Counted from the stretch's first letter, positions 13,363 through 39,856 are shown. The stretch is DNA of 51,357 bases from Octopus bimaculoides (GCF_001194135.2 NC_068991.1:15214248-15265604), one strand, 5' to 3'. Notes: a model not told the origin generated them from the sequence alone. Translations and numbers: made by a program.

Positions 13363-13424
13363 TCACAAATACCTACTTATCTACCTCCCAACATACATAT
13401 ACAAATACATACACATATACTTAC

Positions 13425-13777
13425 AGGCTACAAACTTTCATTTGTAATTATCATAGGGGCATTTGGCTTTGTATCTACAGGTTTACACCAAAACAAGACT
13501 TTTCGAAGAAAAAGCAAAAGAAACTGACGCACATTCTCCAAATTCACTCCATTAGTGACACAATGAAAGCTTGTAGGACATTCCAAAGATTCTACATTTG
13601 AGATTATTTAGATAAATAGAATCACACATTCGGTTGTGTGCATCAACAGTTCAACCAACACTTCAATTCAACCACATATTTGCAAACATCAGAAACCCTC
13701 TTAAGTCAAAAATAATTGCCGCTTTGTTTGCGACCGACTTGAACTCTACAACGAAGAACTTAAAATTCAAAGAAAAA
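13425..13777 (+). mobile_element. R4-clade RLE LINE (family B) 3' end plus 3' UTR, ending in (CATA)n
   Basis: Frameshifted GYKLSFVIIIGAFGFVSTG...TFQRFY end; aligns along its length with 38705-39097. Confidence 0.85.
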
Positions 13778-13809
13778 CATACATACATACATACATGCAT
13801 ACATACATT

Positions 13810-14245
13810 GAAAACATATCTTACAATGGCACCTATAACAAAACACGTATCACTAAAGAATATTACAGCCGAATAAAGAAAATTTGGACTTCAGAACACT
13901 CTGCATTCAATAGAACAGAGGCCTATAATATGTTTGCAGTGCCAGTACTCATATCAACATTTGGGCTGCTCGATTGGACGCTTGATAAGATCTGAGACAT
14001 CGATGTGAAATCCCGGAAGATACTAACAAGCACACATAATTTCCACATAAATAGTGACGTAGACCGCCTCTGCCTAAAACAAGGCGGCAGAGGTTTAACA
14101 TCGATCTAAAATGGCTTTGAATATCGTATCATATCCCTTCGGCAATGTCTTTTAACCACCAAGTGTCGAAGTTTATCTCTTGACCAAGTTTGCATACGTG
14201 AGGCTGATAACATCATAAGATTTGGAAGACAGCTTTGGAAGGCAG
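13810..14245 (+). mobile_element. R4-clade LINE (family B) RT-thumb fragment
   Basis: ENISYNGTYNKTRITKEYYSRIKKIWTSEHSAFNRTEAYNMFAVPVLISTFGLLDWTLDKI*DIDVKSRKILTSTHNFHINSDVDRLCLKQGGRGL; paralogous to 26390-26990. Confidence 0.9.
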
Positions 14246-14460
14246 ATTTGGAATGAAGCATTGAAACCTAGATAAAGACATACATATAAATACATACATC
14301 ACAAAAACATACTACATACAGTCACACGTACATATACGTGTGTATGTGTACACAAACACACATACGCACATATATACTCTCACGCAAGCACACGCACACG
14401 TCTGCGGATTTTTCTATGCGCGTGCGTGTGTTTATAGGTTTGAATGTATGTAGATTAATA

Positions 14461-14587
14461 TACGAGAGGTGTATAAAAAGTCTTGAGCCTCAAAGAAACA
14501 GAACATGGTGCAAGACTTCTGATGAAGGTAAAAGACTTCAAGATTCAAAGGCTTTGAAGGCTCAAAACCTTTCATACACCCCTCGTA
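14461..14587. mobile_element. Mariner-type MITE (127 bp, about 30-bp TIRs, TA-flanked)
   Basis: Left TACGAGAGGTGTATAAAAAGTCTTGAGCCT versus reverse complement of right TACGAGGGGTGTATGAAAGGTTTTGAGCCT; TA at 14459-60 and 14588-89. Confidence 0.88.
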
Positions 14588-15084
14588 TAAGGGCGTAGGC
14601 TCGAAAAAACATGGAGGTTTCTTTTCTGTTCGTTATATGATTACAATCCATTATGGTTGCTGGTGTGTGTAGTAGCCCTTTAGGCAATCAGCTGCCCATA
14701 CAAAGGCTTTCATTCGTAGATAAATATTTTCTTTGGTTAAGAGAGATTGTCACCAATTTACGACACAAGTATAGCGTTATAAATAAATTACATTTGAAAC
14801 CAAAAGCAAAAAAAAAAAAGAAGAAGCGATAATTATAAAATAAATGAGATGAAAAGAAAATTTTTATTAAACATATTTAATATATATCGTTTTAGCAAAA
14901 TACATACATGAATATATAACACCTACACACACACACACACACACACACACATGATGTAAGTCGATCCCACGTGGATTTACTGCAATGTGATAAAATGTTG
15001 GAGTTTAATGACCTGTTATTAATTAAACTCTTATTTACTGTGGATTTACCTTTTGATGTTTATACATCAATTCTCTGTATGGAT

Positions 15085-35806: not shown

Positions 35807-36069
35807 ATATTTATTACCAAAAGTAAACCAGTAGTAACTCAATCGACAATTTATCCGGGATTACGTTATCCTGCATGTCCTTTCATTTGTTAGATTGTAG
35901 TTCGAAGGATATTAAAATACCTCAGAGAATAAGAAAATTTATTTTATTTATTGATAACATGTAAAAAAGCAAAGAAACAAAGAAACAGAAAAAAGAAAAA
36001 GGAAAAGGGGAAAAGGGGCGGTAAGCAGCAGAAGAAGAGAGACAACAGGTCACACAACCCAGAATAAAT

Positions 36070-36460
36070 GGCGTACTCAACTGCGCCCTGCGGTAATGAC
36101 CGCGATAGCGTTGCCGCGGAGGATGGCTAACAACACTCACCGCAGCAGCCACTCAACCGCATGATGTTCATTTCTCAGACGGGCTGCGGTTATCACGATT
36201 TTGTGGAGGAAATTAATAATGCTTGGTCCGAGAACACACCACGTCTCGACAGTGACTGGCACAAACTGATAGCGGCCGGTCAGCCCCCTGCATTTATTTA
36301 TTCTACTGTCTTTTGCGTTACGGGCGGCCCCAGTCAGTACAGTAAGGTTTGAACTGAAGAATGTTTTGCTGCACGTCGCATCCCAGAAAGAATGAGGAAA
36401 ATATTTACTGATATGTTTACGGACACCAAGACAGTTTAACATGAGTAGTGGAAACATCCG
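36070..36460 (-). mobile_element. CRE-like (RLE) non-LTR retrotransposon 3' fragment
   Basis: WDATCSKT...AARNAKDSRINKCRGLTGRYQFVPVTVETWCVLGP...EWLLR*VLLAILRGNAIAV matches the CRE-clade WDATC...VPVAVET...RGNA endonuclease pattern. Confidence 0.8.
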
Positions 36461-38034
36461 AATTATGCTTCAGATCCATTTAAGTGTAAATCAAAAGAAA
36501 TGAAAGAATGTTCCACCAAAACTTAAATTAGAATTGCAACTTAACCATTGTAATCATTGTAATTAGTGAACTATAAGCGCGTGAATGGTTTTACAATTTA
36601 ATTAAAANNNNNNNNNNNNNNNNNNNNNNNNNNNNNNNNNNNNNNNNNNNNNNNNNNNNNNNNNNNNNNNNNNNNNNNNNNNNNNNNNNNNNNNNNNNNN
36701 NNNNNNNNNNNNNNNNNNNNNNNNNNNNNNNNNNNNNNNNNNNNNNNNNNNNNNNNNNNNNNNNNNNNNNATATATATATATATATATATATATATATAT
36801 ATATATACATGCACTCGTATAATATATATATTCATACATACAAAAGATAAGGAAGAAGGTTTCAATACAGCATAAGCTTATTATTGGTCATAATTGTTTC
36901 AACACTATACCACTTCAAACCACATTACATATAGATGATTATGCGTGATGAATTACATCAAAATAGCCGTAGAAAACCGGAGGGCAGAGGGGCTCATATT
37001 TAACAAGTAGCAGCAATAATATTACTCCATCTGTTAGAAATAACAGGCAATTCTTCTTAAAATCACATCCTGCTCTGTTAGAAAAGAATGGCTATTTGGA
37101 CAATGTGTTATTGCTAAGCCTCAAGTAAGACTTGAATACACATGCTTATTGGGAAAAAGTAGTTAAGCCGTGATCATTCCATATTTGTTTTGAGCAAAGT
37201 GAACACAGGACCGTGTTATACAAAGAGCCGTTATATTCTAAACGAGGTGGATGTTATTTAAAGATCTATTGCTATTTCTTACGAGCCGAGTGTCAAGGTT
37301 TCTTGTTGAATGCGTGCAGAAGCAACTTCTTAAATGTGAGCTGGCTTTGACCACCGGTTTTCAACAGATATTGTCTACAAAAGTTTACATCGAGCACTAA
37401 ACACGTAAATCCTGCTACACAGAAAGGATCTGCAAAATAATGATAATTAAATAACATATTTTCTATTCACAAGGGGCACATTTATATCCTTCCATTTGTC
37501 ATAAATAGGTCGTATTCAATTTCAGCTTTTGGGAAAGATCCATGCTGTCTATCGTATATTATTTTATTTTTACGCATTTTCCCAACCTACTTTACTTAAT
37601 TGAATCAATTTCCAATCAAGCTGAATTATAGCTGTATTATATTACAGCAATATATATATATACAGTAATTATATTTATTAACTTATTTCAATAAGTTCCA
37701 CCTTTAAGTGTAAAGTTGATTGCTCCTATAATATTTGTTAATATTTGTTTTTCTTAAGCTTTTTTTTATATTTACTTGCGCACATTAAACTCTACCTCGT
37801 TTATTGATTTCTAATTCTTTGTAAGTTGTTCATTATTGTCGTAGAACTAATTTTTTTTAAAACTTCCTTACTCTATATCAGAAGATATTGATTTTTATTG
37901 AGTTGGTTTTGGAATATGATGTACATATGGTATGAATAATTTTTAGGACCATTTTCGATTCATATCCATGTCCTGTTGATTCGATATTTCTCAGCAAAAC
38001 GTATTTATCGGGGATTTTTTTTTCTTTTTGTCAT

Positions 38035-38215
38035 TACTCTTTTCCGTTTTATCTTCTTATTTGTTCCAGTCACTGAACTGCGGCCGTGCTGGGTCCGCCT
38101 GGAAGAGTCTAATCGAAGAAATCGATTCCAGTAACTATTTTGTTAAGCTTGGTATTTTACTATCAAACCACTAAGTTACGGCAGCGTAAACAAACCAACA
38201 CCCGTTGCCAAACAG
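38035..38215 (-). mobile_element. Old S1-related SINE 3' half
   Basis: CAGTCACTGAACTGCGGCCGTGCTGG...CACTAAGTTACGGCAGCGTAAACAAACCAACA. Confidence 0.7.
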
Positions 38216-38704
38216 CAGTAGAGGAAATTACGCGTTTACATGTATGTATGTGTGTATGTATGTATGTATCTATCTATCTATCTATCTATCTATCTATCTA
38301 TCTATCTATCTATCTCTCTATATAAATTTATATAAATAAGGATAAGATCGTTAATAAAAATACCGATCATATCAAGTGGCTAGCATGGGAATAAAAACCT
38401 CATAGGTAATAATTATTAGCAAAATTATAATTAAAGGTATCTAAACGATACCCTCATGCTAGATATAGCAGTCAAAACTTGACACATATGCATGTGTCTG
38501 TGTGTGCTTGTTTGCCTTCAGCACCAAAACAGGGTGAATTTCTAGTCAGTTGTGCCAAATCGTCAGTCTCCAGTCCTCTCAGTTGAATAACTCTCGGTTG
38601 TTCAATGTCGTGCATTATATAATCGAATGTGTCTATCTGGAATGTAAATACATATAACCTGGAAGAATCAATATGCATGTAGACTCCCAACAGTGTCTAG
38701 TCTC

Positions 38705-39097
38705 CTACTTACAGCTCTAGTAACCTGACAATACATTTTCATTTGTACCTGTCCACCTAGGTGCATTAGGCTACATACCTACAGACTAACACTAAAACCT
38801 ACAAGTACTGGGCTTTTCGAAGAAGGAGCAAAAGAAACTGGCGCACGTTCTCCAAATCAAATCTATATGCGACACTGTGAGGATTTGCAAGACGTTCCAA
38901 AGATTCTACATCTGAGATTCTTTAGATGAAGATATGCACACACTCGGTTGTGTGCATGAACAGTTCAACCAACACGTCAACTCAGCTACATATTTACAAA
39001 CACCTGGAAGTTACTTAACTCAAAAAGTCTCATCGCTTTGTTAACGACTGGTTTGAACTTTCTGAAGAACTTAAACAAAATTTAAATTTAAAAAAAA
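38705..39097 (+). mobile_element. R4-clade LINE (family B) 3' end plus 3' UTR, ending in (CA)n
   Basis: PDNTFSFVPVHLGALGYIPTD*H*NLQVLGFSKKEQKKLAHVLQIKSICDTVRICKTFQRFYI*; paralogous to 13425-13777. Confidence 0.88.
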
Positions 39098-39856
39098 ACA
39101 CACACAAACACACAGGCTTACATGCACACACACACACACACACACACACACACACACACACACACACACACACACACACACACACACACGTGAAAACACA
39201 TGCACATATATAAATATGAATCCTGAAACGAGATATAAAGTATAAAATATAAGAATCTATAATCTTAATCTTAATTTTGGTATCTACCTTCAAAATTAGC
39301 CTGCAGGACACATTTAACTAAGCACACAGCATAACAATAATCACATATATACTACCCCGTCTAGCTAAGTGCATTATATATTTCTATTTAATGTATATTC
39401 GTTCTGAGCAATACACTTAGTATTAATCTTATACATTGGGATTTATTAATGTATATTAACATAAAAGTTTGTACGTTGGCGTTTCAGCAGCATCATTTAA
39501 AATGCATCTACCAATATATATATATAAGTACATGTGAATCGGAAAGAATGTACACGTGATTAAATAAAGCGATATATAATACTGTCGTACATACAATACA
39601 CAAATATAAAAAGAAACAAATACATACACACAAAATTACACACGGACAGTCACACACGCATATATATTTATAAATAAGAGTGTATATATACATACGTGCA
39701 TATATATATATACATACGTATATGTACATACATACATGCACATATATATATATACATACATACATACATACATACATACATGCACATATATATACACACA
39801 CATACATACATACATACATACACACATATATATATAAATATATACATACACACACA

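Follow-up and report, generated by a model that had tools for sequence, protein, structure and literature searches.

Octopus LINEs with a restriction-like endonuclease probably insert in a fixed orientation into ACAT/AC microsatellites

Do the ACAT-type repeats that adjoin fragments of a long interspersed nuclear element (LINE) in the genome of Octopus bimaculoides form the target into which the element inserts, or are they a tail that it brings along? The question is raised by a stretch of 51,357 bases (G000:C11:15214248-15265604 of the 2.34-Gb assembly; hereafter the window), in which the original prediction had recognized a single R4-clade family, B, aimed at (CATA)n/(CA)n instead of TAA. 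We analysed the fragments in the window and searched the same assembly for further copies, and we compared the octopus elements with relatives from other sources. We read the fragments as decayed, mostly 5′-truncated copies of LINEs from a highly abundant clade that encodes a restriction-like endonuclease (RLE) and inserts into (ACAT)n/(AC)n in a fixed orientation, and we give this reading a probability of roughly 0.82. Target- and orientation-specific integration into ACAT/AC repeats is well supported: the elements are embedded in ACAT/AC on both sides and in one orientation, so the repeat is a target and not only a tail.

Fragments of the element and their repeat junctions

The features of the window that bear on the question are given below. 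Residues are numbered on a reference protein of 1158 residues built from a relative.

13393..13425 (+): degenerate ACAT-type repeat, the 5′ junction of B1
13426..13776 (+): B1, 3′ end of an old-lineage copy, comprising the last ~60 codons of the open reading frame (ORF) and the 3′ untranslated region (UTR) and ending ...CAAAGAAAA
13777..13808 (+): (ACAT)8, the tail of B1 and the 5′ flank of B2
13810..14275 (+): B2, part of the interior of a younger sister-lineage copy (reference residues 725-861), with neither end preserved
25965..26320 (+): a fifth fragment, 3′ end of a copy, reference residues 1072-1154 and 3′ UTR
26322..26388 (+): (ACAT)17, the tail of the fifth fragment and the 5′ flank of B3
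26390..27025 (+): B3, C-terminal part of the reverse-transcriptase region, reference residues ~655-857, 5′-truncated and broken on its 3′ side
27620..29481 (+): not family B; two tandem Dong-like RLE copies (27620-28340 and 28360-29352)
38697..39097 (+): B4, 3′ end of an old-lineage copy (locus L016)
39098..39190, end approximate (+): (CA)n-type tail or target after B4

Every junction that had been predicted between B1-B4 and an ACAT- or CA-type repeat is present. B1 follows its degenerate repeat, upstream of which lie unrelated sequence and an antisense copy of a tRNA-derived short interspersed nuclear element (SINE). B2 gives way to degenerate ACAT-like sequence at 14276-14320, and B3 begins at about 26390-26412, directly after (ACAT)17. 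The truncation points of B2 and B3 differ, as had been stated (reference residue 725 versus ~662). No microsatellite is present at the 5′ ends of B4 and of the fifth fragment.

The view of these sequences as four fragments of one family needed revision. The copy at 25965-26320 had been overlooked, and B1 and B4 represent an old lineage whereas B2 derives from a younger sister. Identities range from 68.5% (B2 versus B3, over 181 bases) to 73-74% (B1 versus B4), and translations of genome copies fall into at least three related lineages. B2 carries the motif RIISLRQCLLTTKCRS, which is also found in an intact ORF of 306 residues elsewhere (L031:1719-2636). In addition, B3 belongs to family B only as far as about 27025. 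The adjoining 27025-27620 is unrelated to the family, and 27620-29352 is occupied by the Dong-like copies, with (TAA)4 between the two and (TAA)43 at their end (29353-29481).

As (ACAT)8 and (ACAT)17 are the tails of the copies upstream of them, B1-(ACAT)8-B2 and [25965-26320]-(ACAT)17-B3 form arrays in head-to-tail order. Upstream tails thus account for both of the window's 5′ microsatellites, and the window alone cannot separate target from tail. The earlier argument that a microsatellite at a 5′ truncation point favours a target over a tail therefore fails for the window, and it is the junctions genome-wide that bear it out.

The arrays are also what would be seen if (ACAT)n were only a 3′ tail, carried or synthesized by the element, and insertion sites were unselected. 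Repeats at 5′ ends would then come from landing in old tails or from template jumping to the (ACAU)n end of another RNA, and template jumping by the R2 reverse transcriptase is an established activity. B1 and B2 are, however, of different lineages, which is at odds with a single joint insertion.

Repeats at 5′ junctions across the genome

We scored the 5′ junctions of 54 index copies collected in three independent searches, in none of which did the query contain repeat sequence. A junction was counted as positive when an ACAT run of at least 16 bases and 87% purity lay between -91 and +14 of the 5′ boundary. Sense runs were found at 13 of 24 boundaries obtained with a 3′ UTR DNA query, at 19 of 22 obtained with an endonuclease-region protein query and at 7 of 8 obtained with a reverse-transcriptase protein query, which amounts to 39/54 in total; antisense runs were found at 2/54. 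The same test applied to every position of the window gives a background of 7.5% on the plus strand and 4.9% on the minus strand, ACAT runs of at least 16 bases covering 2.3% and 1.4% of these strands, respectively. The possibility raised with the original prediction, that 5′ junctions might be no richer in CATA than their background, does not hold for these 54 copies when set against the window (39/54 versus 7.5%, binomial p=4e-32). The orientation of the runs is equally skewed (39 sense versus 2 antisense, p=8e-10). The sense run lies at most 30 bases upstream of the boundary in 30/54 copies, and the truncation points, each adjoining a repeat, are spread from reference residue ~247 to ~1119.

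These junctions bear directly on the tail explanation. The 3′ end of another copy lies upstream of the repeat in only 11-12 of the 39 positive junctions, which are of the same kind as the two in the window and could be read as old tails. In the remaining ~27, no such end is found within 400 bases, and no antisense copy lies upstream of the repeat at any of the 39. A pure tail model is therefore insufficient for the solo cases, and a preference for landing in old tails would itself be target specificity for that sequence. We consider it unlikely that the repeats are tails and nothing more.

Another possibility is that copies accumulate passively, surviving in microsatellite-rich, gene-poor or low-recombination DNA with no sequence-specific integration, as reportedly suggested for Drosophila Waldo-A and Waldo-B, which lie near CA repeats. 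The window is indeed rich in ACAT/AC (28 runs on the plus strand and 17 on the minus strand), and most of these runs are without a copy. However, the 39:2 strand bias contradicts passive accumulation, as do the proximity of the sense run to the boundary and the recurrence of the same pattern in unrelated assemblies, where each lineage has its own repeat. We therefore regard passive accumulation as very improbable.

Two side observations concern the boundaries themselves. The tRNA-derived SINE present upstream of B1 also interrupts LINE copies in L006 (L032) and L046, where it produces false 5′ boundaries. At a solo insertion in locus L011 (G000:C4:79160513-79160632), the sequence upstream is the terminus of an abundant repeat, with copies 93-95% identical, that ends 8 bases before the ACAT run; this repeat is possibly a non-autonomous element whose tail is of the same type.

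Abundance, lineages and 3′ ends in the octopus genome

A DNA search of the genome with B1 gave 1207 first-look candidates, the scored copies being 73-80% identical. Protein searches gave many more, with 50,220 first-look candidates for the intact 306-residue endonuclease-region ORF and 20,580 for the reverse-transcriptase query. The octopus copies carry the reverse-transcriptase domain in pieces; one copy listed with a 1413-residue open frame proved to be an artefact of unread bases. The reverse-transcriptase search also matched a second lineage of ~40% identity (G000:C8:32704703-32705467 and G000:C16:32831297-32832055), with uninterrupted frames of 1099 and 1128 residues. The "Dong" that the octopus literature describes as recently active may be this second lineage.

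At their 3′ ends, copies run straight into ACAT-type repeats in 28/28 readable young-lineage loci and in most old-lineage loci. Old-lineage copies end ...AACTCAAAGAAAA followed by (ACAT)n, or by (AC)n instead in about 6/28. Young-lineage copies end ...CAAATCTGCAC-(ATAC)n, followed by a conserved segment of ~110 bases and then again by (ATAC)n. Among the collected sequences, 34 occurrences of this terminal segment are in sense and one is in antisense orientation, with ACAT on both sides at every occurrence. In the 25965-26320 copy, the sequence of the segment (window 26230-26320) is uninterrupted within the 3′ UTR. The segment is therefore the true 3′ end of the element, and the internal repeat of the young lineage is secondary.

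The internal repeat, found in L034-L062 around 2480-2760, splits the terminal segment off from the remainder of the 3′ UTR. The segment also occurs alone between ACAT repeats, and such solitary segments are probably extremely 5′-truncated copies. Folding of the ~110-base segment gave a consensus of -2.8 kcal/mol with no covariation, and thus no evidence of RNA structure.

The presence of internal (ACAT)n in the young-lineage 3′ UTR and its absence from the 25965-26320 copy show that repeats can arise or expand inside the element. All of the flanking repeats might on this basis have grown after insertion from short ACAT-like seeds at the element ends. Growth of this kind cannot, however, yield repeats upstream of arbitrary truncation points, and the 5′ junctions are scattered over dozens of internal positions with no seed in common. 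Post-insertion growth can hardly be the explanation.

Relatives outside octopus

We extended the comparison to protein relatives, which were found at 38-55% identity on long metagenome contigs. In two protein searches, almost all matches were unnamed metagenome proteins, although one match bears out O. bimaculoides as the source of the window. Repeats are arranged around these relatives as follows.

L082: (ACAT)87, full-length copy, (ACAT)125
L084: (ATAC)73, copy truncated at residue 570, (ACAT)73
L080, L081 and L083: arrays with ACAT-type spacers, one spacer in L081 being (ATACA)12.6
L076: near-full-length copy followed by (ACAT)31 but preceded by no repeat
L078 (1799-6257): (ACTT)21, full-length copy, (ACTT)12.5
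L079 (1636-8527): (TTAC)16, copy, (ACTT)34, copy; counted among the full-length relatives
L085 (2669-4802): truncated copy immediately preceded by (TTAC)12
L086-L089: deeper relatives in marine metagenomes, TARA included, ending ...AATAATTTGAG(AC)n

The full-length relatives on L078, L079 and L082 have long repeats directly before the 5′ UTR, which a tail at the 3′ end does not explain. The ...AATAATTTGAG(AC)n junction of the deeper relatives is identical in three independent contigs. Because one assembly contains both the ACTT-type L078 and the ACAT-type L082, it is the element lineage and not the host that the repeat follows.

In a midpoint-rooted tree of the C-terminal 460 residues of 131 sequences, the octopus copies form a single clade. 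Elements of the ACAT type lie on both sides of the root, with ACTT types nested among them. The trait is old and widespread. The (TAA)n copies of the window show 25-33% identity to the ACAT-containing clade in the endonuclease region, with P0063, P0079 and P0040 as the best matches. The proposal that the octopus family targets ACAT repeats instead of TAA is therefore correct as to the ACAT/AC flanks, but these do not record a recent switch: the lineage is deep and widespread, and has (ACTT)n and (AC)n sisters. The finding itself is solid, and its scope goes somewhat beyond the original proposal; the behaviour is common to the relatives in metagenomes.

Taken further, the relatives suggest one widespread RLE-LINE clade that has repeatedly been re-aimed, at (ACAT)n, (ACTT)n, (AC)n, perhaps (ATACA)n and, more distantly, (TAA)n, with differently targeted lineages side by side in one genome. 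The clade and its series of targets may be undescribed. We put this broader proposal forward tentatively, at a little under even odds.

Element architecture and clade placement

The full reading frame could be reconstructed in the relatives, where it spans ~1150 residues (L078, L079 and L082), with one frameshift in each of the two copies that we examined closely. The order of domains is an N-terminal helical domain of ~70 residues, a reverse transcriptase, a CCHC motif and a PD-(D/E)xK restriction-like endonuclease, followed by a short 3′ UTR that leads directly into ACAT or, less often, AC repeats. Pfam identified RVT_1 on L078 (E=3e-16) and a weak match to zf-RVT, and returned neither Exo_endo_phos, the apurinic-type endonuclease, nor a zinc-finger match. 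The translations contain CxxC...H....C, RHD, (R/K)PD(I/L), a downstream acidic residue (E or D) and ...EK; at the level of these motifs, the region C-terminal to the reverse transcriptase comprises a CCHC motif and a restriction-like endonuclease. Among solved structures, R2 proteins match best, and only over the reverse-transcriptase core.

The conserved N-terminal block, which is also present in octopus locus L073, is modelled by AlphaFold as three helices with a mean predicted local distance difference test score (pLDDT) of 75. It has no match in Pfam, and a Foldseek search against the PDB found none that was significant. The 5′ UTRs are not conserved between copies. An Rfam scan of L078, L076, L073 and L032 gave no match of the hepatitis delta virus (HDV) type at E<=1, although such ribozymes are poorly detected by sequence models; the only matches were repeat-driven microRNA false positives.

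Elements of the R4 clade lack N-terminal zinc fingers and have a divergent Myb/SANT-like N-terminal domain (PMC7998251), and they carry an HDV-like self-cleaving ribozyme at the 5′ end (PMC3774820). The architecture of the ACAT elements fits R4/Dong as described in these two studies. Dong-R4 is moreover the abundant RLE class in published octopus annotations (PMC13282606, PMC8967140, PMC9115989). Flanks of (ACAT)n or (AC)n depart from the known R4-clade targets, 28S rDNA and (TAA)n, but this is not disqualifying. Judged by these features, we favour with moderate confidence a putative membership of the R4 clade over HERO or an unnamed RLE clade.

A possible mechanism and the weight of the evidence

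By analogy with R2 and Dong, the element protein would recognize the repeat and its endonuclease would nick the (ATGT)n strand. The freed 3′ end could then pair with the (ACAU)n end of the element RNA and prime reverse transcription. Synthesis would often halt early, and joining of the cDNA end to the upstream part of the same repeat would leave (ACAT)n at whatever truncation point had been reached. Head-to-tail arrays such as B1-(ACAT)8-B2 arise when one repeat, which can be the tail left by an earlier copy, is hit more than once.

Several points weigh against target-specific insertion or limit the case for it. No ACAT run is present at 15/54 junctions, mostly of the old lineage, and these may reflect decay of the repeat or off-target insertions. 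On L076, the repeat is confined to the 3′ end, as a tail would be. BLAST ends served as the starting point for manual curation of the 5′ boundaries, because all-against-all BLAST extension overran into neighbouring copies and SINEs, and the background was drawn from the 51-kb window only. The presence of the repeat at the site before insertion is inferred: a paralogy search for the empty site, in which the flanks of the L011 copy were joined, recovered no contiguous paralogue and no pre-insertion site, because the upstream flank belongs to another abundant repeat, whose terminus lies 8 bases before the microsatellite. Finally, the biochemical steps all come by analogy.

Other features of the window

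The interval between B3 and the first TAA-type copy (27025-27620) contains an open frame of 81 codons at 27013-27258 on the minus strand. The TAA-type copies have a further counterpart in the window: at 8559-8732, the minus strand has 77 bases that match the end of the first copy (28254-28330) at 89.6%; they lie beside (TAT)18/(TGT)n and probably represent a further TAA-type 3′ end and its tail. Copies of the tRNA-derived SINE are found at 13200-13370 (-), 15100-15500 (+), 16960-17360 (-) and 21150-21400 (+).

The assembly has five gaps in the window (19664-20466, 22719-23417, 33734-33992, 34230-34754 and 36608-36770). All of them lie between fragments and none (0/5) is in or adjoining one; therefore, the finding does not need continuity or a reading frame across a gap. 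The gaps could conceal further repeats or copies. Their borders are simple repeats (AC, TACA/AT, TA, a 15-base tandem repeat and a TCTA-type repeat), and the assembly appears to break at microsatellites. Counts of repeats and element copies in such regions are therefore lower bounds.

Implications and comparison with known systems

Site-specific RLE LINEs serve as a model for how retrotransposons choose their targets and are under development for gene insertion. ACAT/AC appears to be a new target for this known kind of element and does not define a new category of element. The ACAT and ACTT sister lineages offer a comparative system in which the determinants of specificity could be mapped. If the clade has indeed been re-aimed repeatedly, it would provide a natural series of retargeted site-specific retrotransposons, which could show whether the target is set by the N-terminal helical domain, by the endonuclease or by pairing of the RNA 3′ end with the nicked strand. 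In the octopus genome, ACAT repeats are occupied and interrupted by tens of thousands of copies, which probably seed such repeats too; the assembly gaps in the window likewise fall at simple repeats.

The elements have the repeat on both sides, the fixed orientation and the arrays by which microsatellite-specific LINEs (Dong, Waldo, Mino, Kibi, Koshi and Togen) are recognized. Among RLE elements, the searchable literature gives Dong the microsatellite target (TAA)n and Togen (TG)n, and assigns some HERO families to repeats that it leaves unnamed (PMC3812793, PMC4640811, PMC7998251). In the same papers, Waldo and Mino, which are unrelated and have an apurinic-type endonuclease, are the only elements with a reported ACAY/AC target. 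Repbase notes excepted, we found nothing in that literature to say that R4, Dong or any other RLE element targets ACAT or ACTT.

R2 provides the best-matching solved structures and much of the mechanism that we propose. The structural match covers the reverse-transcriptase part, with none outside that core, and R2 differs from the ACAT elements in its 28S rDNA target and its N-terminal zinc-finger and Myb domains.

Togen of fish comprises (TG)n-specific RLE elements whose position near NeSL and HERO is unresolved (PMC4640811). Like the ACAT clade, in which the deepest relatives end in (AC)n, it is an RLE LINE on a CA/TG dinucleotide repeat. Its target is described as (TG)n, as against the sense-strand (AC)n/(ACAT)n seen here.

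Dong, an R4-clade element of Bombyx, Anopheles, Biomphalaria, ostracods and cnidarians, targets (TAA)n (PMC3812793, PMC7998251). It resembles the ACAT elements in its single ORF, in which the reverse transcriptase is followed by CCHC and restriction-like endonuclease, and in the lack of both an apurinic-type endonuclease and an N-terminal zinc finger. Dong also shares the microsatellite on both sides and the head-to-tail arrays (PMC3812793, PMC7998251), and the (TAA)n copies near B3 show this same pattern with a different repeat. The difference lies in the TAA repeat, as opposed to ACAT/AC, and in the distant relationship of the window (TAA)n copies to family B.

Waldo and Mino, insect elements of the R1 clade, target ACAY and AC repeats (PMC3812793), and so have practically the same target motif as the octopus elements, ACAT/ACAC repeats. 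They differ in having an N-terminal apurinic-type endonuclease, in place of which the ACAT elements have a C-terminal restriction-like endonuclease. The shared target is convergent. An RLE clade on ACAT/AC, with an ACTT-aimed sister in the same genome, makes a clean case of convergence with Waldo and Mino.

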